64,000 nucleotides of DNA from Dimorphilus gyrociliatus. Taxonomy: Eukaryota; Animalia; Annelida. The position numbers and the translations under genes are program-made. Positions 40,881 through 54,800 of this stretch are shown here, piece by piece; position 1 is the stretch's first letter, and the number at the start of each line of letters is the position of its first letter. The DNA is taken from positions 4,604,408 to 4,668,407 of the forward strand of contig CAJFCJ010000006.1 of assembly GCA_904063045.1 (NCBI GenBank). Direction: 5' to 3'. The notes beneath the pieces are model-generated. The model did no database searches. It was given only the letters and a program-made list of their open reading frames with translations, and had not been told where the DNA came from.

Positions 40881-43186
40881 ATGCGAATTTTGCTGTTTAC
40901 TGTCTTTTTTGGATATGTACAGCCAATATGTAGAGATCCGTGGTTCAAGGATAAACCAGAGATTTTTGCCAGGAAAACGTGTGGTAAATGTTTTGATCAT
41001 CTCTTCTCGAGAAAGGGTATTCTTGACTTGAATGTAACCGGTCCGTATTACCTACAAAGACTCAATATTACCTATGAACCTGTAGCTGGAAAAGATTCTA
41101 TAGTCTGTAGGAAATTTTTGAATAAAGACGAATGCCGCAAATGGACGACATGTTGCGAAACAGCTCGCAAGTGTTGTCTGATGCAAATGAATGAAAGAAA
41201 ATTCAAAGAAAATGACTGTCCCGCTACATGGGACGGAATCGCATGCTGGCGGAGAACAAGCGGTGGAAGAACGGTTAGCCAAAAATGTCCAATGTATTTT
41301 GCTAACGAATGGACATTCTGGAGGAGTCCAAGGGCCAAGAAGACATGTTTTGATAACGGAACATGGTTAACTCATCCAACATACGGAAATGAGTGGACTG
41401 ACTTTAACGAGTGCCACGATACAAAGGTATATATTTATATATTGTATTTACACTCGGGAAAATCTAGTTTGTTTACAGTATGATATAAAGATAATGAAAA
41501 TAGGCCTTTATGTAGAATTTGCCGGGCAATCCATCAGCATATCGTCACTCTTATTGAGTATCTTTCTAATCTTCTTAATAAAGAATCTACGCCAATCTTT
41601 ATTGAATACCGAAGGAAATCGTTTACATATTAACCTTTTCTTCGCCATGCTCTTCTCCTCCATAGCGAGAACTGCAACGAATATTATGGTTTTTGACCGT
41701 TTTCAAAATATAAGAAAACCTGCCGATACTTTTATGGCGGCTCATCCAAACTGGTGCAGATTATTGCATGTCAGCGAACAGTATGGTTATAGTTGCGTCT
41801 ACGGAGCAATGCTCTGCGAAGGCGTCTATTTATATAAAAGAATTTCTAAAGTAATGCAGATTGTTCAAGCAGAATCGCTAATGAAATATATTCTCTTTAC
41901 GTGGAGTAAGTATCTTTTTAATAAAGTTAATAGGACGCTCTCGTAATTTTTCCGTATTATTACTTTCCTTATTCTTTTCAATCTCTTTTTCAATATGTAT
42001 TATCCTTCACGTCTATTTGTTTTTCCTCTCTACATTAAAACGTATATTTCTCGTTTTTTATTAATTCGAACGCCATCTACAGTTTGCCCCGTTCTTACTG
42101 TTGGAACTTATTCGATTGTTATGTTAGTTAAAGAAAAAGGTAACAGGTGTTGGACGGTGTCCTCTTCTCCATCTCTGCATAATTTTCAGTACATTCAACA
42201 CGTCCCCAATATGATCTTTCTCACGGTAAGCTGTTTACTTTCTTAATCAATTTTTATCCTTTCTCTTCCTCATTCTTGTTTGATAAATAGATTCATTTTA
42301 ATAGAAAAAAAACTATCAAATAAAGAAATAAAAATCGTATTTGATTTAATATTTCATTTTATTCCTTTTTACAGTTAAATACCTTCTTTTTAATCCGAAT
42401 CGAGTACATTCTCTGCACCAAACTACGATCAAACGTCAGTGATTCGAGAATTTACGCCCTAAGGTTCTTTTTTTTCATTTTTACCATTTCACTTATCCTA
42501 AGCAGGGAAAAAAAACTAACATAAAAGGGACAAATTATAAAAATAAGGAGAAGTAATTTTTTTTATTTTTGAGTACCGTTCAGAGAGACTTTTACTATTC
42601 TCTCTCTCATTTATCATTCTCTTTTTGTTTCGTACAATTGCATACAAATATATGCTTTTTGCTTATATATCTAACTGTATTTACTGTTTTTAATAGGCGA
42701 GCACTCAGAGCTACTTTCTTCCTCATTCCGGTTTTTGGAATACAATTCTTCTTCATTCTCTACACTCCAAAATTTTATCCTCCATATCAAGTGATTGCAA
42801 GCATTGTTCAGAGCAGTCAAGTACGTAAGATTGAACAAATAAAAGTATACAATGTATCTCTTTAAAATATTAGATAATATTAACAGAGCTTTATCTATTT
42901 TAACATTTTAATAATCCATATCTCTTTATTAGATGTTACAACTAAAGAAATAAGCTATATAGCAACATCTATACAGTACATAAACTATTGTATAATTTCA
43001 ATATCATATAAGTCTGTTTTAATAATAAAAATAATGCCGTACAATTAACTATATGGAAGATTATTTTTATTTGTTTATAATAATATTTGTAGCATCTGTC
43101 GGAATTGCCAATCCGACAAAAAACTATTTTTATAAAATTATAGAAAATTAAATATAATGCAAGAATTAAGTTAGGATATATTATTC

Positions 43187-43218
<32 letters not shown>

Positions 43219-43552
43219 GAGTGTGTGTGTTTAGAGAGAGAGAGAGAGAGTGAGTGAGTGAGTGAGTGAGAAAAAAAGAGTTAGTAAGTGAGATAATATA
43301 AAGTTTCAAGTACAAACACAAGTCTAATATTCTTACTAAAGAATTTACTAATGAAAAAAATAACATTCCTATCGAGATAATCTTTTTTATTAATGAATAA
43401 AAGTTTCTTTCATAATATTTAATTAAGGAGAAAGACAAAAAGAAAGCACATTAAAACTTTTACTTATTGGAATAATAGATGTAGTAAAATCAATAAATAA
43501 ACAACGCTTTATTGGTTATTAGATACGAATATTTTGTATAATATAGTATAAA

Positions 43553-43589
<37 letters not shown>

Positions 43590-43884
43590 TATATATATAT
43601 AGAAATTATTTGATTCACCTTAAACTGTAAAATGATTCTTTTTTTATAGGGTTTCTTGGTTGCTACTTTGTACTGCTTCACCACTAAAGAGGTTCGTTTT
43701 ATACTTACTCGTTTTCTATTCTTCTTCAGAAATCTCTCATTAAATTAAACTTGTTTATGTACTATATATATACAGTATATATATATATACAGTATGTTAT
43801 ATAATTTAATTATACACTTTAAATAATTTTAATTTTCTTTTTTCTCCTTTTGCTTTCTACTTCTACCCTCTTCCTTCCTTTCTC

Positions 43885-43933
<49 letters not shown>

Positions 43934-44698
43934 TATTACTCAAAACTCCCAATCAAAACAAACAAACAATTACTAAAAAGCATAAACCAGTTAAAAGATC
44001 AAACAAACAAATAAAAGTTATACTAAAATACAACGTTTTCCGTAAGTATTTGGCATGATGGAGACGTCTGTTCTTTATCTATCTATTCCTCGTTCTCTCT
44101 TTTTTTTCTTTCTTTCTTCTTTCAATGCTCTGCCTAACTATCTCTTTCTCTTTTACTTTTGTTCTATTACTCTATACCATTTTTTTCTTTTAATTGCATG
44201 GTAAATGTCTGAGTTATTGGTATGTTTTCTTTTTTGTTTCTTTTAAACATCATTCGGACAAGTGAAGAAATGTTCAAGAATAATGTTTCAAGTTCTTTTA
44301 GTTTGCTTTCATTTATAGAGTTACGGACTTAAAAGACCCTTTTTCATTAGGTGTGCGATGCTAGAAGAAGAGCGTTCGAAAATTGCCGGAAAGCGTCACG
44401 AGAGGCCCGAAAAGAGTCCCAAATGTCCATGACGAGGCTGTCTAGGTTATCAGTCGATTTTAATAGATCGAAGAAAGTTAAACCTAGTCTACCAGATTTA
44501 ATACGACATTATATGAATAGAAGGCAATCGAGGAGTTCCCAACAATCAACTTCCTCAACGACAACCGATATCGAATCGGAAACAGCGTCGCACAAATTAT
44601 CCGAACTGTCCGAACGATATCCCTTAAAACCGATCGTCGAAGCGGAAAACTCTTCCGGAGAGCGACATCTGACGGCTGAAAACGTCAAACTGAACTGA
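40881..44698 (+). CDS. Class B (secretin-family) GPCR, calcitonin/CGRP/DH31-receptor-like. Exons 40881-41426, 41479-41905, 42083-42225, 42375-42463, 42697-42820, 43650-43691, 44351-44698
   Basis: Hormone-receptor domain CPATWDGIACW...CP...KTCFDNGTW...WTDFNEC. TM motifs LHINLF, MLCEGVYL, RALRATFFLIPVFG and QGFLVATLYCFTTKEV. Confidence 0.92.
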
Positions 44699-45070
44699 CA
44701 AACACCGACTGTTTTTGTTGTTTTCTTCTTTCTCTTTGGCGTTTTATATACATGTCTCGCGTGTAAACATATGCTTGAAACGTGCGCGCATATAATATAA
44801 CATTAGCATATATACAGAAACGGGTGGGTTAGCCGAAATAATACGAGTATAGCGGGGGCGAAAGGCGAAAGAGAATGAGCAGAAGTACATGGGGGCAGGT
44901 GTGTGCCAGAAACGGACTTCCTATAAAAAAAATGAATAAAAACCTCTCTTCTCTTTAGCTTTCATATAACTTTTCATATCTTGTTTATTTAAATAAACAT
45001 ATTTATTAAATGTTTAAATTAACAACTTGGCAATTTTTCACACAATATATAAACTATATATCTAATACTA

Positions 45071-45101
<31 letters not shown>

Positions 45102-45566
45102 TTAGAATATATGCTGTAATCTACTGAGATATATACTTTATATATATATATATATTAAGATATACTATACATAAATATATGTATATACTGTATAACCTGT
45201 ATATATTATATACTTAAGCATATTTATATATACTATATAAAGCATACCGTTGATATACATATGTATATATATTTAGTATTAATGCATCTCTCTCTCACTC
45301 ACTGTCTCTCTCTCTCTCTCTCTCTCTCTCGCTCTTTTTCACTCTCTCTCGTCTACTTTCTTTTTTTAAAATAAAAGAAATTTTTCTCAGCTATATAGAT
45401 CTAGGCCTACCTTTTTAAAAAGCGTGGGTAAAGCGGCAGCTGTCACAGGCCTTTATGTACTGGAGAACTTTCATAAACGATTATTATTTGCGGTAGGTCG
45501 CTCGAAGTCGAGAATTGTGCTTCCAGAGCGCCGTCTGCCGGTAACGCGGAAGAGAAAAAAGCGGGG

Positions 45567-48238
45567 ATGGAATTGCGGCCACAGAAGGGAGCTATGCTTG
45601 CCGTTCTCGCCGCATTTTTTGCCCTCCATATCGGTAACGTAAGGATGAGTCAAAACGAGGTTAGACCAACTTAATATTTTTTTTCTTTACTAAGGCCTAT
45701 TCATATATCATTATGTTTCTATATTTGTATAGGACCTTACGCAATCATTCAACGATCCAATGTGGCCGAAAATGTGGTACTTGGTAAGGAAATGTGTTTT
45801 TACCACTAAACTTTCTTACTTTTTTCTACTTCTCTGTCTCTCTCTCTCTCTCTCTCACTTTCTCCATATTCTTCTTACTCCTCTGACTCTTCTTACACTT
45901 CTCTTTTACTCTCGCGCTGAATTCTTCTACCTCTTTCTCACTTTCATCCAATCACTCCTTTATCTATCAATCTATCTATCTATCTACCTATCACTCATTC
46001 CTCTTATTTTCCTCGGCAAATTTAATACCCTATTACTTTTCATTCATTGCGTTTTCTTTTCTTTTAGCGAAATGTTGCGCAATTAATTCTTTTATTTATA
46101 CTGTACACTTTATCTAATTATCTTATCTACGAAGCTCTGATTTACTGCAGCGACAACAAAGTGGCATGCGAATAGCCGAGGCTTGGCAAAGGCTCGGTGT
46201 TTCAGGAAAGAATACAACTATAGCTGTAGTTGATGATACATTAGATGTAACCAATAAAGAGTTAAAGAGGAGGATATTGAGAAATCATGACGTCACGGAT
46301 AACGTCACCAACAAACCGGAAGATGAAAGAAGGTGGACTCATGGTACAGATGTTATGTCAGTGGCGGCAGGGGAGGGTAATAATTCGTACTGTGGAGTGG
46401 GTGTTGCCTATGAAGCTTTTCTGATAGGTATTAACCCTCTTAGCGCGGAGAAAGTGGACGAAAAAATGTCAAGGGCTTTTCGAATTGCTGCTGCAGAGAG
46501 TGATATCGCCGTAGCAGCTTGGGGACCTGAGCCGCACGTGTATTCGGGACCCAAAGAATCGCTGAGAATAGCTTTAAAGCAAGCGGAAACCGCCAGGGAC
46601 GGTCGCGGTCTAATAATTGTGCATGCGGCCGGAAACGGTGGTTATAATGACGATTGCGCTTACGACGGTTACTCAACATCACCAATCATGCTTAGCGTCA
46701 CTTCTGTCTATAAGTCGCTTAAGAGACCTCTGTATAACGAAAAGTGTTCCTCAGCCTTGATTACTGCCTACACATCGAGTGTTTCGAGATACGATAATAA
46801 CTTGGATAGTTTAGTATGGACATCAGGATCGGGATCAAACGGTGGCTATTGCAAAAATGACTTTTCCGCTACATCAGCCTCAGCTGCTCTAATAACCGGC
46901 GTCTCCTCCCTATTAATAGACGCTAACCCAGCGTTAAGCTGGCGAGACGTTCAATATATTTTCGCGCTTACTGCCCGTGTCTTTGGAGAAATGGAGAGTG
47001 TTAGTTTTCAATTTAACTCTGCAGGATTGGCCTTTAATAAATTCTTTGGATTCGGTTTGGCCGATGCTTACGGGGCTGTAAGACTGGCTCTAAGTTGGCC
47101 AGGAGTGGGTCCGAGAAAAAACTGCTCAATTACTTCGTTGAACACCCATTCCAATTCAACATTCCGTGTCCGTATTTCCGCCATCAATTGCCTTGTTCGA
47201 TATGTCGAACATGTCACTCTTGCTCTTGATTTAAAGTCATCGAGTCGACAAAATCTAAGAGCGACAATAACTTCTCCATCAGGTATTACATCGTCCATTT
47301 TAAGCGGTATTGTCCCTGATACAAAGGTGAAAAACATCGATCTTAATTTTAGTTCCAAAGACAATGCTAACTGGCCTTTTATGACTGTTCACTTTTGGGG
47401 AGAAAAAGCGTTAGGTGATTGGATAATAAGAGTTGAACCGAAATCCTCTTTTTCTAACTTTGTATCAGCTACCTTATCAATTTACGGAACGGATGTTGAA
47501 GCGCCAATATATCTTCGTTCTTGTAGACTTGAAGATGACAGCGAAACTGAAGACATAACATTCAAGGACATGTTTGGCGTGTGGGTGTCCTTAACTGACA
47601 ATCGTCGATTGCAGATAAAAAGAAAAAAACTACCTCAAGCATGTCATCGATGTGTGTGTCCAACTGCAGAGTTCTTTGAAGATGGTAAACTTGATTCTTC
47701 GAAGTTAACTTTTGCGTCAGGATACGCTAGAGATTTATTTAACAAGTCATCTTTACATTTTTATCCAGTTATTTACAGTGATTTAACAATAATAGTTGAT
47801 ATTGATTATTCTGAAAAAAATATGATTATAGTCAATTTTTCCACCGGAAATAATACAAGAAAATTGAAGATGAGAAAAGAAAACCGAGTAAATTTACAGG
47901 AAACAACTAATGTCGATAAAACACAAACCGAATCAATACAAACCGAGTCGACGTTAACATCGACAGCGTCAACATCGTCAACACTGTCAAGAACAAGGCA
48001 GTCAGAGACAACTAAAAATATTGTTATCAGTTCATCCAAAGCACCGAAGACAATTTACGAACATTCTAACGAATTTCATTACTATCTCATTATTATCATA
48101 TTCTTATCACTCGTTATTGCCGCATTAGTAATTTCGTTGATTATCGTAACAGCTAAGGTGAAGAGGTTAGAAAAGAGAAAAAAAAGACAAGGGAATGATG
48201 TTCATTTACATCTATTCAAAAATGTTAACGTACTCTAA
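45567..48238 (+). CDS. Furin/kexin-like (S8B) type I membrane protease lacking a prodomain. Exons 45567-45659, 45733-45783, 46151-48238
   Basis: Signal peptide, FNDPMWPKMWYL, catalytic-site motifs VVDD / HGT / AAGNGG / ATSAS, P-domain (VEHV..., NWPFMTVHFWGEK..GDW), S/T-rich stalk, TM helix and a short basic tail. Confidence 0.9.
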
Positions 48239-51200
48239 AAAACTTTTATTATTGTTTTGATTGTTTTTTTTTCTGTCTTTCTTTCTTTCTTTCTTTTTTT
48301 ATCATTTTCTTTCAACTTCTTTTTTATTTATTAACATTTTTCTACATTTTTCTATAAAGTATATGCATTTATATATATATATATATATACAGTATAAATA
48401 TACAGTATATATATATACAGTATATATATTTATGAAGAGGAAGAAGAGGGGGAGATAGGAGGAGAAATATAAATAAATAGGAAATTCCTTCCAAACAAGA
48501 TATACACTTTTATGACTTGTTCATAATTCTTTCTTTATAATAAATGGTGTAGGCTACACAATAAAACTAGACTGAACTATAAAGCTGAATAAATAATGAC
48601 TTTATTTGTTCATGGTCAATTAGCTGTAGTGGTATTTTGGTAAGTAATTGCAAGAGATGTGCTAATAATTACAGTTTATATCGTCCTTCTAGAAATATTG
48701 GAATAATATTATATATGTATATATATATAAGCTTTTTTTAAATCATATACTGTTATACATATATATATAGCTGTTTTTTTTATACAAAATGTACTATATA
48801 TATGGTTGTTTTTATTGTTTTAATTTGATAAACTTTGATAAATTATAGACTAAATTCTATCTTTTACTCTACTTTTCTTTTTCTTTTTTTATTATTATTT
48901 TACAGTTTACAAGGTCTATCTCATAGGCTTACAAATGTATATACATTTCCATGTGTACCAGGTTACACTTTCGCATATTCAGTTCACGTATTTCTCAATA
49001 CGAAACCTGAATACATCTACTTTATGTGCTTTAAAGTAAATAAGCCGATTAATTGGAATTCATACTATAAAGATTCAATAAATAAAATAGATAAGTTAGA
49101 TATATACAGTCTATACACGTTAGTATGTGTGTATAACCCGTTAATAAATTTATTTTTCTATATCTTTATGTTATTTTTAATATAGTTCATTTGAAATTAT
49201 AGAAATATACAAGTTCAATTGTCATATAAATATAGAAATAAAAGTTGTTTTATACTCCTTTATTGATATATGATCAATTCATCTTTTTTTTGTTATTCTA
49301 GATCTTCTCTATTACATCTTTTATTTATTATTTAATTTTAAATTTAATATCATTCATTCATTCTTCTTCTTTTATTAGTAATACCATTATTATCAATAAT
49401 ATTATTATTATTCTTTCACCCATTCCCTCCCATCCTTCCTTCCATCTTCTTCTCTAACTCTATCTGTTTTTTTCATAACTTTACAATGAATCATATATAC
49501 TTTTTGTTACAATTGGTTTTTAATAAACAGCATTAGGCCTATGTAGCTTATCAGTGTTATTTCCCAAAACAAAAAACAAAGAAATAAAAAATTTTCTTGT
49601 TGAAAATAATTTTTCCGAATTTGTGTCTTGTGGCGCCATCTATAGGGTTAATTAAAAGAATACAAGCTGTAACACGAAGAAGCTGAATCAAAAAGATGGC
49701 GTGACTGGAAAAAGCCTTAGGAATTAGCCAAAAAAAACGTGCTTCTACAAAGTAACGCCGCTGAGCTAATCAAGGCGTCGAGCGTCGAAGCGAAAAACAA
49801 CACGCTCGACCGGCAAACTGACCGAACTAAAAACGGACGACGTCGGCTCTTTGAAGTCGGAACACCATAGCAACCAGTTGGCATCCAAACGTCCCAGTCT
49901 AATGTGTCTCTCAACTATGTAGATGTAAAAATTTCTTATACGGGTTTATATTATATATATATTTTCAATCATTTTCCATTTATATACGTTATATACATAT
50001 AGATATGTACAGTATGTTGGATATATAGTATCAGGCATATATAAAATATGTACCTATACTTTATATATAGCTTTTATAAAATATAAATATATCTGTATAT
50101 GCTGGATATCTAGAGGTTTTATATAATATGCTACGTTTCTATAACTTATATTAAAAGATAAAGAACGAAAGAAAGAGCTCCATTCTTGTGACAAGAAAAT
50201 CTTGGACATACGTTCTCTTCTATATAACGTATGCTTCTTGTTGTTAAGCATCTGTATACCATTACGTAGACACACATATAGTGTATAAGTAAAACTCGAA
50301 ACATGTCTGTTAAGTTACATATAGAATTTTCATAACGTACAGTATATATATATATATATATAAACATATAGAGGTGTACGTCAGTATACCCCGAGCGTCT
50401 CTCTCCATGAAACAATGCGAACCAGACACCTGTTCGCTCTCGCAGATCGCTGTTGAATAGGGTGGCATGACGCGGCATCCGGACGATTCGTCCATTTGCC
50501 AAATGACTGTTTGCTGCGTCTCTCGGCAGCCTAATTAGCGGCGGGACGCTTCGCCTTTTTTAATCTTTATATTACGCCTACAATCCGCATCGTCTAGGCC
50601 TCTATCGGCTTATGTCTGTCCGCCCATCTCAAAAGCGGTTGTCAGTCCCCAGACGGCCTATAAACACTAAATACGATATAATATACTAGCAAGATTGTAA
50701 GTTTCATATAAATATTAATAAAATGAGTCGAAAAATTTCTATATATATATATATATATATATGTTTATTTATATATACAATATGTACAGTATAGACAGTA
50801 TATATACATATACATTTCAGTATTTATTTAATAATGTTGTTAAATATATTTTAAAATTAACATCGTCACATATTCTTTTTTATTTACTATATACCTTCAA
50901 CATGAGACGTCCGCACTGTATAGTATATACGCAGTATGTATTTTGTACCTAGGCCTATTAAAGGGGCGTCTAACGATCGCGTACTGCAGGTATACGCTCG
51001 AATTGAAAGGCGTTTTCTGCACCGAACGAACGCAGGCGGTTTGCACCTAGCCGACGCCGACAATGCGCCGACTTTCGCGCTTTGCCATTCATGCATGCTA
51101 GAGGAGAGAAAAAAATTGCAAATTTCCAAAGCATCTAGTCGACCTATTACGGCGTTTTTCTGTACGTCGAGCGGGACGCGGCGCTCGGTAATGAGTAACT

Positions 51201-51818
51201 CGACACCTGCAATCATCTCTTACTCTCGTCCTGTTGCAGTCGCGACAGTTTGTTTTTGTTTTTTTCGCCCACGAAACACCAAAAGAAAAAAAAACTACGT
51301 ATTTTAGCAAATATAAAGAATATTTAACGCTTTTTGTTACAAATTTTACACGCATAGGTGAATAAATATTCATACAGTATACATTTCACAGTATATGAAC
51401 AGTTTATACCTATATACTCGAGTAAATATCTATATACCTACGCACCTAATTCAAATCTCTCTTAGCTCTGAAAATTCTTATTATTAATCTAAATAACATA
51501 AAGGTACTAATTATTGTCAGGTTGAGTATTATTTTAAGGCCCAAAAACAGCTCTCAGAACGGAGAACAAAGGAGAAAAGGAGAAATTTAAATATCTACAA
51601 AAAATTATAATAATAAATTAAATACTGTTCCTACTTAAAGATATATAAGTTGTAGAGTATATAGAGGAGAGAGGTATTGGCAAAAAAGGACTATATACAA
51701 CATATATTACGGTACGTCCGGAGCTCCATCTATAGCTGATTATACTAATGAGCTATCTTTCGCCGTGTCGGGGAGCCTATACACCGCATCGCGGCGTCCC
51801 GGCAGTTGAAACGCCGCC

Positions 51819-54800
51819 ATGAACGAATCGAAACGGCAGCAAATGTTCAACACTTTCCAATCTTGGGCATTACAAAATTATGGAGATTCTGGTAAAACTA
51901 AGACAGTTACTCTGGCTAAGTACGCAAGAATAGCAAAGATTCTCAGTGGAGAGGAAACAGCAACATCGGAGAATTCGAAATTTCGATTTTGGGTAAAAGC
52001 TAAAGGTTTCAAATTAGGCAGAGACGGTTCAACTCAGATTCTCTATATACCAAGTAAATCTACTGTAAGTACCGTTTGTCTTATCATTCTATCTATGCAC
52101 AATTCTATCCACCTAGTCCCTTCTCTCTCTGTCGCTCACTCTCTTTTCCCTTTTACCTACCTACCTTTACCTACCTGCCTATCTTTTATACTCTCTCCCC
52201 GTCCTTATTTCTCTCTCTCTCTCTCTTTCTCTCGTTAACCTCTTATTTTTCAATTTTACCTTCGCTCTTTTTCTCTGTTTTTCTCGTAATTCTCATTCTA
52301 GTTTATATATATATTCTCCTTCATTCACCTCACTTCTCCCTTATTTCACGCGCGGACGTCCGGAGGCGTTACACCTGAGCGTGGAGAGAGGCCTTGAAAG
52401 ACGCTGCATACATGCAGCGGATCAATTCATCGATGGGACAGCGCCGCAACGGTACCCGGAGCTCTCTCTCGCGCGCGGCAACAATCAGATTAGCCGAAGC
52501 GTTAATTAGCGTTTCGTGTAGGCCTAGACAAAGAGACGCCATTGGCGCGGACACGCCCTGCGCCATCAAATGCAAAAACGCCACACCCAAAACGTTGAGC
52601 GTGCCGGGCGCTTTGTCCGGCCTCGGGCGTAGCCGGCTCGTTAGTAGTCGACGCTCATCAAAAGTCGACGATCGTGCCGGGCGACGAGATACCGATTTCA
52701 CGGAGAGACGCTTCGAAGCAACTATCTGATGCACGCATGTACCTGCCTACCTACTGTCTTCTTGCTAAGTCGAAAGTCGTGTTAAAAAAGGTGCCGGAGG
52801 CTGTCTGCAGCCCACGACCCGTCGGCCGGCTAATAGACGGCGCGCTTCCGGTGCGTCGAGAGACGCCTTTTGTACGGCGAAATGCGGCGATGCGCCTTTG
52901 ACAGATATCCTGAATACCTGCGCTCTGTTGAACATCAAAGGGTGATGCCGATGGCTACTTGACCGTAGCTTCAGAGACGCCGCGCCTTTCTATTGTCGTG
53001 TATACACATAGTCGTTGAGACCTGCTAGCGTCTACGGTAGTCATAGCGACGCCCGGGTCGGAACACAGCTTCGTGGGACGCCCAACGCTTTGAAGACTCC
53101 GTAGTCACGCACTAGGCGTCGAGTTTCGAGCGGCCGTCGCTTGTTTGGCGTCAATTAGGCCTGCGACTACTTTGTTTGGTTTCGGCGCTTACGCGCACAG
53201 ATTTTTCTTTTCTTATACCTTTTTCTAGACGCCTGGACGGTCCGCACTCGTCCAAAATTCAATTAAGATTATATAGGAAGCCCTAGAGATGACGAGACGC
53301 GGCTTCCGGTCGATTTGCGACGGTCAGCCAGAGAAGAAGAGTGTATGCATAAATAACTTGGACAGGAAAATAGTGAACTACAGAGATGGGGAAAAGTGGT
53401 AAACAAAAAGAGAAAAGTAAAAGAGAAAATATTTTAAGCGAAAGAGAGACATCAAGAGAAATAAGTAGATAGATAGATAGATAGATAAAGAGGGAGAGGG
53501 AGAAGGAGAAGGAGCAAAAATAAAGATACACTGATATAGAACAGGATAGAGAATAAGAATAGGAAAGAAACACAGCCAGGGAGCAAAAAGGAGGGAAAGA
53601 GAAAAAAAGAAAAAAAAAGGAGGGAGACTCAGAGAGAGAGAGAGAGAGAGAGGGAAAAAAGAAACGCCGCGAGCGTCGAGCCACCGGTATCGGACGTTGA
53701 TCCGCACCGAACGAGACGCCCACCGGCAGCGTCTAAGCAGGTACTCGTTCGCCAATTACCGTCATCGATCCGCAGCGTCCAACACGTGAATGCTTTGATT
53801 CGGTTGGGGGAGACGCCCCACTCACCTTTAGCCCTTTCGGCCTTAAGCCCGTCCTCGGCGTAGGGAAAATAGCGCATTATTTTCCCACAGCAAAGCCGGT
53901 ACCGTCTAATATGACAGTAATGACGGCCAGTGTCTACGGTGTCCGTCGACCCGGTTGGTGCTAATTATTCGAATAAACAAATTAATTTTTCTTCGAACAT
54001 TCGTATCTTGGAATGAATAAGACTATGTTTTATAAGGTGAATTATGAAATATATAAACACACAGAGTATAGATTTAATAATAGACTAAATAATTATTCAT
54101 TTTATCAATGTATTTTTCTGATCTACGTAGAATGACCGACAGGAAGTAACAAGTTACAAAAGAGTAGCTATAGTTGAGGATTTCTTCGATATAATCTACA
54201 ATGTTCACGTTGAGATGGACGGTCGAGCTGGAAAACACGCCGGTCAAAAGAGAACTTATAGAGCGGTAGGTGACGCTTTTTCTTCATTTTTTAATTTCCA
54301 TTATTTTTTAGATGCAGTATACTGTACACTCAATATAACGGTCCGTAATATATCACATAAACTGTATATAAAAGATATAGGAAAACGAGTATATGTATTA
54401 AACTATAGATAATATTTTCGCATACGGTCTGAAAAATTTTGCAGTATAATATACATAATAGGTTTGTATATGGTTGAAGAGAAAATCTGGAAAAAATAGC
54501 ATTTAGATTCCCAAGCCAACTCAAAACCTTTGAACTAATACTTTTTTAAGGTTCAATATAAAATACATATATATATATATATCACTGTATATAAACAGTA
54601 AATATACAACACCTATAGATATACATAAATATATAAGAACCATATATTTATATATACCAATATAAACTAGGTGTTTATTATATTACAGGAACATCTTTTA
54701 ATACGTTACAGTTTTATTTTACACTCTCTAAATTTTTATTTGTGTACACATTGAAAATTTTTTTACTTATTTGTACATAGTGTCTATATTTTGTATGTGT

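Follow-up and report, generated by a model that had tools for sequence, protein, structure and literature searches.

A 64,000-nucleotide stretch of forward-strand DNA from the miniature marine annelid Dimorphilus gyrociliatus (contig CAJFCJ010000006.1, positions 4,604,408 to 4,668,407; below, the window, with position 1 its first letter) is AT-rich and eukaryotic in character and carries, at 45567–48238 on the plus strand, a candidate gene of the convertase family with three coding exons and introns that are all in phase 0. Its predicted product is anchored in the membrane as a type-I protein and descends from a proprotein convertase of the kexin/furin family. The prodomain is, in textbook terms, both the intramolecular chaperone and the zymogen lock of subtilases and convertases, and comparative evidence gives good support to the view that this gene product has no room for a convertase prodomain and contains no trace of one. 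Judged by comparison with its one close relative, the gene is real and conserved, and it is most likely a lineage-restricted, neofunctionalised convertase paralogue. As to what the protein does, a tethered serine hydrolase with changed specificity, folding without a prodomain in cis, is the possibility that we put first, at a likelihood falling just short of even.

The gene opens with a signal peptide and resumes, one short intron later, at the mature N-terminus of convertases. The exon 1 product has a basic n-region and a 13-residue hydrophobic core (residues 8–20) ahead of the sequence NVRMSQNE; in the 9-residue Kyte–Doolittle windows by which the signal peptide was judged, those starting at residues 8–12 score 2.3–2.7. 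The predicted signal peptide would admit the product to the secretory pathway, and its hydrophobic core is kept in the orthologue described below. The start codon at 45567 has a purine at −3 and G at +4. Exon 2 codes for DLTQSFNDPMWPKMWYL, is followed directly by GTAAGG, and is matched by ∼20 convertases at their own mature N-terminus (tblastn, best E 0.003), a likeness that goes beyond chance. Its Asp aligns with furin Asp115, which we take to be a ligand of the Ca1 site. A preliminary description of this DNA, made from its letters, had proposed just this arrangement (a signal-peptide exon ending in NVRMSQNE, a 73-nt intron, and an exon coding for the convertase mature N-terminus), and each element stood up: the sequence, hydrophobic core and GT donor of exon 1, the GT..AG ends of the intron and its identical length in the orthologue, and the tblastn and profile matches to exon 2 all agree with it. 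The length of the intron is typical of the species, whose median intron is 66 bp (PMC7854359). Short introns and a match in a marine metatranscriptome accord with the stated origin of the DNA.

We sought a prodomain by tblastn with 30 convertases across the 64-kb window, and outside the gene obtained only chance-level matches. A custom profile of convertase pro-regions, taken from the signal peptide to the mature N-terminus of about 20 convertases, was run against the six-frame translation of the window, covering both strands except 48356–48434 (an AT-rich repeat lying just 3′ of the stop codon); it matched exon 2 only, with its last 14 positions (E 0.018). Ahead of the catalytic domain there is no RxK/RR, RxxR, KR or RR. 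The S8 pro-domain of ∼80 aa with its basic autocleavage site, a feature of the family, is thus lacking here and in the orthologue, and the earlier claim that the gene has neither an RxK/RR site nor space for a prodomain agrees with both window searches, which matched no pro-region. The upstream gene on the same strand encodes a class-B (secretin-family) G-protein-coupled receptor (40881–44698, +; HRM at 40881–41483, 7tm_2 at 41389–41946). The open reading frame (ORF) of the receptor's C-terminal tail stops at 44698, ∼870 bp upstream, AATAAA signals follow at 44935 and 44992, and roughly 500 bp of repeat-rich DNA lie between the end of that gene and the conserved promoter block. D. gyrociliatus is reported to be without spliced leaders or operons (PMC7854359).

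The only close relative among 5.8 billion clustered proteins is P0002, which is 66–68% identical and whose locus (L001/L002) is contained in two Logan contigs (runs SRR23372228 and SRR23372229). That locus keeps the ATG, the 93-nt exon 1, the 73-nt intron 1, the 51-nt exon 2, the four splice sites and the upstream stops, and the genes downstream are syntenic between the window and the relative's locus. The search for orthologues that the preliminary description had recommended therefore yielded one with the same exon–intron layout, and with signs of purifying selection. Exon 3, which opens at 46151 after CAG and is uninterrupted for 695 codons to 48238 (+), has a ratio of non-synonymous to synonymous substitution rates (dN/dS) of 0.20 at a dS of 1.1, and its indels are all in-frame; this argues for a working gene under purifying selection. 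By part, dN/dS is 0.17 in the catalytic domain, 0.33 in the P domain and 0.11, the lowest in the gene, in the domain at residues 453–600. Exon 2 has a dN of 0.087 and a dS of 0.635, which points to coding constraint there too. It is very improbable that the locus is a decaying or unexpressed copy without function: although no transcript-derived protein was found in databases and the sequence is very divergent, a 2,085-nt frame has stayed open in two species at these rates with only in-frame indels, and the splice sites and promoter region are conserved.

The 5′ end is also closely shared. Identity to the relative's locus in the 45400–45600 bin, which takes in the 5′ untranslated region (UTR) and the start of exon 1, is 94%, and because neighbouring unconstrained DNA is 57–70% identical this amounts to strong constraint; a promoter and first exon here would be consistent with it. 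The DNA of exon 1 is 92.5% identical to the orthologue, with a dS of only 0.05 compared with ∼1.1 in exon 3. In-frame stops stand 30 codons before the ATG (this one common to both species), one codon before exon 2 and 12 codons before exon 3. These data bear on the possibility that the 5′ model is incomplete, with a fast-evolving prodomain encoded in a missed or alternative exon and exon 1 a minor first exon or an alternative one. No part of convertases is less conserved than the prodomain, and exon 1 shows no clear protein-level constraint; in addition, the prodomain-less models of the leech survey discussed below were all incomplete. Against this, the ATG, signal-peptide exon, donor, 73-nt intron and acceptor have been kept in a second species at a dS of about 1.1, a strongly conserved promoter-like block lies directly upstream, in-frame stops come before each exon, the same-strand gene ends 870 bp upstream, and the both-strand profile search was blank. 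On balance, an incomplete 5′ model seems improbable.

Comparison with a brittle star bears on the ancestry of exon 2. A PC1-like gene of Amphiura has an exon that ends at the identical codon and phase (..TGG TAC TTG, then GT) as exon 2; this exon begins about 15 codons earlier and also encodes the last segment of the prodomain and an REKR cleavage site. Since the intron position is identical, intron 2 sits at an ancestral convertase position, and exon 2 is what is left, at the 3′ end, of an ancestral exon that coded also for the end of the prodomain and its cleavage site. The sequence corresponding to exon 3 is divided among at least seven exons in the brittle star and is intronless here, which agrees with the intron loss described for the D. 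gyrociliatus genome (PMC7854359).

The body of the protein, encoded by exon 3, has the architecture of a membrane-anchored convertase. Residue numbers (e.g. Asp28) are those of the exon 3 frame, and the family searches and fold analysis were made with the exon 3 product; coordinates are collected in Table 1. The closest solved structures are yeast Kex2 (E ∼5e-54) and furin (E ∼3e-51), with residues 4–450 aligned, and the kexin/furin chains as a whole match at E 1e-54 to 1e-50 and 29–33% identity, the alignment spanning the P domain to residue ∼450. The AlphaFold model has a mean predicted local distance difference test score (pLDDT) of 67.6, and its catalytic and P domains compare with furin and Kex2 at a target-normalised template modelling score (TM; Foldseek) of ∼0.8. 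Residues 453–600 are modelled by AlphaFold with low confidence, with three strands at 545–575, and the Atlas model of this region has a TM of 0.5–0.6 to small beta-barrel proteins. The idea that it could be a relocated prodomain was ruled out: the region has no Pfam hit, is beta-rich and matches small beta-barrels, not the alpha/beta prodomain fold. The stalk that follows is presumably mucin-like and O-glycosylated. The top 19-residue hydrophobic window of the membrane helix scores 3.4, at residues 646–666, within a model helix at 639–680, and 42 of the 50 residues of helix and tail are identical in the orthologue.

Asp28, His64, the oxyanion Asn162 and Ser242 do not vary across 24 aligned family members or in either worm sequence, confirming by alignment to kexin and furin that, as first described, the catalytic residues are all kept. 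The Cys pairs aligning with furin Cys211–Cys360 and Cys303–Cys333 are retained, and most of the positions aligned to furin Ca1 ligands, including the exon 2 Asp, are kept or conservatively changed. The substrate pocket has been rebuilt, and residues that hardly vary among convertases are replaced in both species. HGTRCAGE reads HGT(D/N)VMSV in the two species, with RCAGE changed to DVMSV here; MLDG is PLSA in both; CNCDGY is CAYDGY; HTGTSASAP is F(SA/GG)(T/S)SASAA; and WGPxDDGKTVDGP has become WGP(EP/KR)H--(VY/KH)SGP, with the loss of D258, D259, D264 and two residues (D258 to Pro or Arg, and D264 to Ser in both species). The furin D154 position is Asp here and Tyr in the orthologue (DDG is DDT here and DYT in the orthologue), the E236 position is Met, and the D191 stretch is deleted or changed. 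Only D306, out of the acidic residues D154, D191, E236, D258, D264 and D306 of the S1/S2/S4 pocket, is kept in both species. In the published furin structures the first five of these line the S1, S2 and S4 pockets with which furin binds basic residues, and because most are replaced, furin-type cleavage after basic residues is unlikely. If the protein is an enzyme, it is unlikely to act as a paired-basic-site convertase.

Table 1. Features of the candidate convertase-family gene, in window coordinates
Feature	Position	Strand	Basis or remark
Promoter-proximal region and 5′ UTR	45390..45566	+	82.5% identity to relative's locus
Coding exon 1: ATG and predicted signal peptide, 31 codons, ending NVRMSQNE	45567..45659	+	sequence; same length, ATG and GT donor in orthologue
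Intron 1, 73 nt, phase 0	45660..45732	+	GT..AG and 73 nt in both species; 69% identical
Coding exon 2 of 17 codons, homologous to the convertase mature N-terminus (F-N-D-P..W-Y-L)	45733..45783	+	tblastn and profile matches
Intron 2, 367 nt, phase 0	45784..46150	+	GTAAGG..CAG; 437 nt in orthologue
Peptidase_S8 catalytic domain, start of exon 3	46151..47056	+	PF00082, E 1.5e-28, residues 19–302
Asp28	46232-46234	+	aligned to kexin and furin
His64	46340-46342	+	aligned to kexin and furin
Oxyanion Asn162	46634-46636	+	aligned to kexin and furin
Ser242	46874-46876	+	aligned to kexin and furin
P (Homo-B) domain	47204..47500	+	PF01483, E 1.6e-12, residues 352–430
Domain without family match, residues 453–600, 4 conserved Cys, probably beta-rich	47507..47950	+	no Pfam hit
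Ser/Thr-rich stalk	47951..48082	+	translation; disordered in model
Transmembrane helix (residues 645–668), 27-residue basic cytoplasmic tail, stop codon	48083..48238	+	hydrophobicity, model

Thus, by descent and fold the predicted protein is a member of the kexin/furin family, from which it departs in the prodomain and in the pocket for basic residues. The term ‘furin-like’ used in the preliminary description is right as far as family membership goes, and overstated in view of the very long branch of its own on which the protein sits and the mostly replaced acidic S1/S2/S4 residues. Because the prodomain and basic-pocket features fail, ‘furin-like protease’ describes ancestry, not likely action.

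Catalysis is plausible from these alignments. The strongest argument for it is that the four residues have survived a stem branch of 3.55 changes per site leading to the worm pair, whose tips measure 0.26 and 0.38; the long stem and short tips suggest a burst of change followed by stable constraint. The loss of a catalytic residue by which a pseudo-protease may be known is not seen, all four being present in both species, nor is there a prodomain that could block the site. The alternative, that the convertase fold serves as a surface binding module, a pseudo-protease or receptor with the catalytic residues kept for structural or binding reasons, draws on the heavy remodelling of the pocket, including the two-residue deletion in the WGPxDDGK loop and the loss of D258, which we take to be both an S1 pocket residue and a Ca2 ligand in furin. 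It draws also on the low model confidence at the catalytic His and the ordinary conservation of the catalytic surroundings (both given below), while the stalk, the anchor and an extra domain with the lowest dN/dS (0.11) would suit a role in reception or adhesion, and PCSK9 is an example of a convertase fold that does its work without acting as an enzyme on its target. As a rule, pseudo-enzymes have lost one catalytic residue or more. Here, the four residues and the core motifs have outlasted the long stem and are identical in both species, and we consider a pseudo-protease unlikely.

The account that we prefer, a neofunctionalised paralogue acting as a tethered hydrolase, begins with a restructuring of the 5′ end, after which the signal-peptide exon is spliced to a new acceptor that lies immediately beyond the former cleavage site. 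Fast divergence, seen as the long stem branch, then gave way to purifying selection. The protein would fold in the endoplasmic reticulum (ER) without a cis prodomain, aided by the P domain, the two conserved disulfide pairs and the residues aligned to the furin Ca1 site, and would then act at the cell surface, held on a glycosylated stalk, as a tethered serine hydrolase that never passes through a zymogen stage. Its specificity would no longer be for paired basic sites, given the replaced acidic S1/S2/S4 residues, and the prodomain may have been lost in one linked event together with the pocket needed to cleave it.

Several observations weigh against this account. To our knowledge, every metazoan convertase that has been tested needs its prodomain to fold, so that a self-folding one would be an exception. 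Within 21-residue stretches around the catalytic residues, the orthologues are no more alike than over the domain on average, so that this comparison lends no extra support to catalysis. The AlphaFold pLDDT is <50 at residues 53–79, which include the catalytic His. At the 5′ end, six of the seven differing codons of exon 1 change the amino acid; exon 1 is therefore conserved at the DNA level and not clearly at the protein level, and, taken with the dS of 0.05, this makes the constraint on exon 1 and the 5′ UTR look nucleotide-level (regulatory or RNA). Lastly, when transcript-derived protein was sought in protein collections, a whole-exon query returned only the genomic ORF and the orthologue, and a 200-residue N-terminal query returned none.

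The relatives of the gene were examined for parallels. In a quick maximum-likelihood tree of 80 sequences, in which long-branch placement is unreliable, the worm pair stands on its long branch beside a PC1-like sequence, weakly (SH-aLRT, the Shimodaira–Hasegawa-like approximate likelihood ratio test, 90). An exhaustive phmmer search over 1.84 billion representatives brought up no further member of the worm-pair lineage; after P0002 (975 bits) come ordinary or multi-domain convertases at 27–38% identity. One giant predicted protein, P0033 (3332 aa, from an ENA contig of 82 kb), has nine kexin-like matched stretches in tandem, and P0034–P0037 have two each.

Uncharacterised convertase-like gene models with S8 and P domains, a short N-terminus and no Pfam S8_pro-domain were found by the phmmer search in other invertebrates also. 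They comprise the Styela clava ‘furin-1-like’ XP_039253183, the Lepeophtheirus salmonis ‘endoprotease bli-4’ XP_040571124 with the equal-length UniProt entry A0A0K2TIG1, Mya arenaria XP_052778571, acanthocephalan models, and sequences from Porites and coral contigs with a ∼20-residue peptide ending RVKR, all without a pro-domain hit. The short-N-terminus models carried in our set as P0139, P0130, P0129, P0105, P0127, P0134, P0144 and P0156 come from sea squirt, salmon louse, coral, clams, acanthocephalan, nematode and one further eukaryote. In such models, 23–59 residues precede the position aligned with residue 1 of exon 3, where exons 1 and 2 of the worm gene add 48. Several begin in the manner of a signal peptide, and in the examples checked the catalytic residues are kept and the pocket is partly altered. 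In the tree they are dispersed, and the worm pair groups with none of them, which points to independent cases or faulty models. Prodomain loss may therefore be recurrent in invertebrate convertase paralogues, or the models may be truncated. In a survey of kexin-like convertases across Metazoa, in which complementary DNA confirmed 12 leech genes, the prodomain counts as a defining domain and no group lacking it is described, and our other literature searches found no prodomain-less metazoan convertase group. Arabidopsis SBT5.2(b) was considered as an analogue and ruled out, what it is without being the signal peptide and five prodomain residues only. The broader proposal, that the worm gene encodes a metazoan kexin-fold protease which folds and works without a prodomain in cis or in trans, and is one case of an undescribed process by which invertebrate genomes repeatedly give rise to convertase paralogues with no prodomain and a remodelled pocket, the models from sea squirt, salmon louse, coral and clam being others, we hold to be doubtful.

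Conserved non-coding DNA is found at two further places. The last ∼110 nt of intron 2 (46041–46150) are 83% identical to the relative, compared with 44% for the 5′ part, and hold a palindromic TTGCGCAA core. The block might hold a branch point or another splicing element, or else act as an intronic enhancer or as an internal promoter; in the last case, it would yield a product from the Met at 46166, without the signal peptide. A search of the conserved 5′ region and intron against Rfam gave nothing significant. Downstream of the gene, the DNA is 81–86% identical to the relative's locus, and for this reason we suspected that the gene itself was evolving abnormally fast. An identity profile in 200-bp steps disposed of this, revealing ultraconserved blocks set between stretches of 57–70%, a neutral level that fits a dS of ∼1.1. 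The blocks at 50400–50600, 51000–51200, 51600–52000 and 52400–53400 are 94–99% identical to L001, with 57–80% in the DNA between them, and the synonymous sites of the gene neighbouring the conserved downstream blocks are near saturation. The first exon of that neighbouring gene (51819 onward) encodes the same protein sequence in the two species. The ∼1-kb block at 52400–53400 has a high GC content (about 49%) and resembles ultraconserved UTR or non-coding sequence around the neighbouring gene; the downstream conserved blocks had no significant match in Rfam.

A family member with no prodomain and a rebuilt pocket is unusual, but not unprecedented. The preliminary description held that a self-folding active enzyme, an enzyme needing a propeptide in trans and a pseudo-protease receptor would each be unusual, and this is too strong in view of the bacterial precedent given below and the short-N-terminus models of several invertebrates. 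The gene provides a concrete protein with which to ask whether the fold can mature without its chaperone, and which compensating changes allow that; if self-folding is true, the gene would show, as an experiment run by nature, how the subtilase fold can become independent of an intramolecular chaperone. It also raises the question of what role a constitutively exposed, membrane-tethered active site with a non-basic pocket might have. If inactive, the protein would represent a new surface receptor that arose from a convertase. In both cases, the gene warns against throwing out every model ‘lacking a prodomain’ as incomplete.

Compared with the kexin/furin convertases (S8B: furin, PC1/3, PC2, PC5/6, PC7, PCSKX and yeast Kex2), the worm protein is alike in its signal peptide, its F-x-D-P..W-Y-L mature N-terminus with an intron after WYL, its S8 domain followed by a P domain, its catalytic triad and oxyanion Asn, and its two disulfide pairs; the type-I membrane anchor is as in furin and PC7. 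It is unlike them in having no prodomain and no RxK/RR site, in the mostly replaced acidic pocket and in the changed RCAGE motif, and it is only 29–37% identical to any of them; on its long stem branch, it falls into none of the six ancestral bilaterian orthology groups with any confidence. Unlike furin, it has another C-terminal domain and lacks a furin-type Cys-rich region or sorting tail. PCSK9 has the convertase fold and acts mainly by binding, not by cleaving a substrate. It differs from the worm protein in having a prodomain, which it cleaves and keeps bound, in belonging to the proteinase-K branch and in having no P domain.

The nearest parallel to a convertase fold made without a prodomain is ASP of Aeromonas sobria, described in a passage of PMC5638518 (citing Kobayashi et al. 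2015) as a propeptide-deficient kexin-like protease for which the product of the adjacent gene, ORF2, is needed as external chaperone and temporary inhibitor. ASP structures 3hjr and 3wqb (the ASP–ORF2 complex) are among the structural matches of the worm protein, at 18% identity and a target-normalised TM of 0.60–0.62. The worm protein might by analogy be an active enzyme served in trans, by a separate prodomain-like protein or by the free prodomain of a canonical convertase paralogue in the ER. The ASP precedent, as that passage gives it, and the presence of 3wqb among the matches speak for this, as do the canonical convertases with prodomains that are to be expected in annelids, 12 having been cloned in leech. 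On the other side, the species has no operons and the pocket that would receive a basic prodomain tail is gone; as for a chaperone gene beside the worm gene, no prodomain-like ORF was found in the 64-kb window, in which an ORF2-like protein was not searched for and the conserved downstream blocks were not assigned to genes. Help in trans therefore has, in our estimate, a small chance of being the explanation. ASP differs from the worm protein in being bacterial, in keeping its Lys/Arg specificity and in having its chaperone gene adjacent in an operon. The two are alike in that the worm protein, judging from its gene, is like ASP a subtilase of the kexin type that carries a P-type domain and is produced with no propeptide at its N-terminus; ASP shows that such a fold is able to mature when no prodomain is present in cis.

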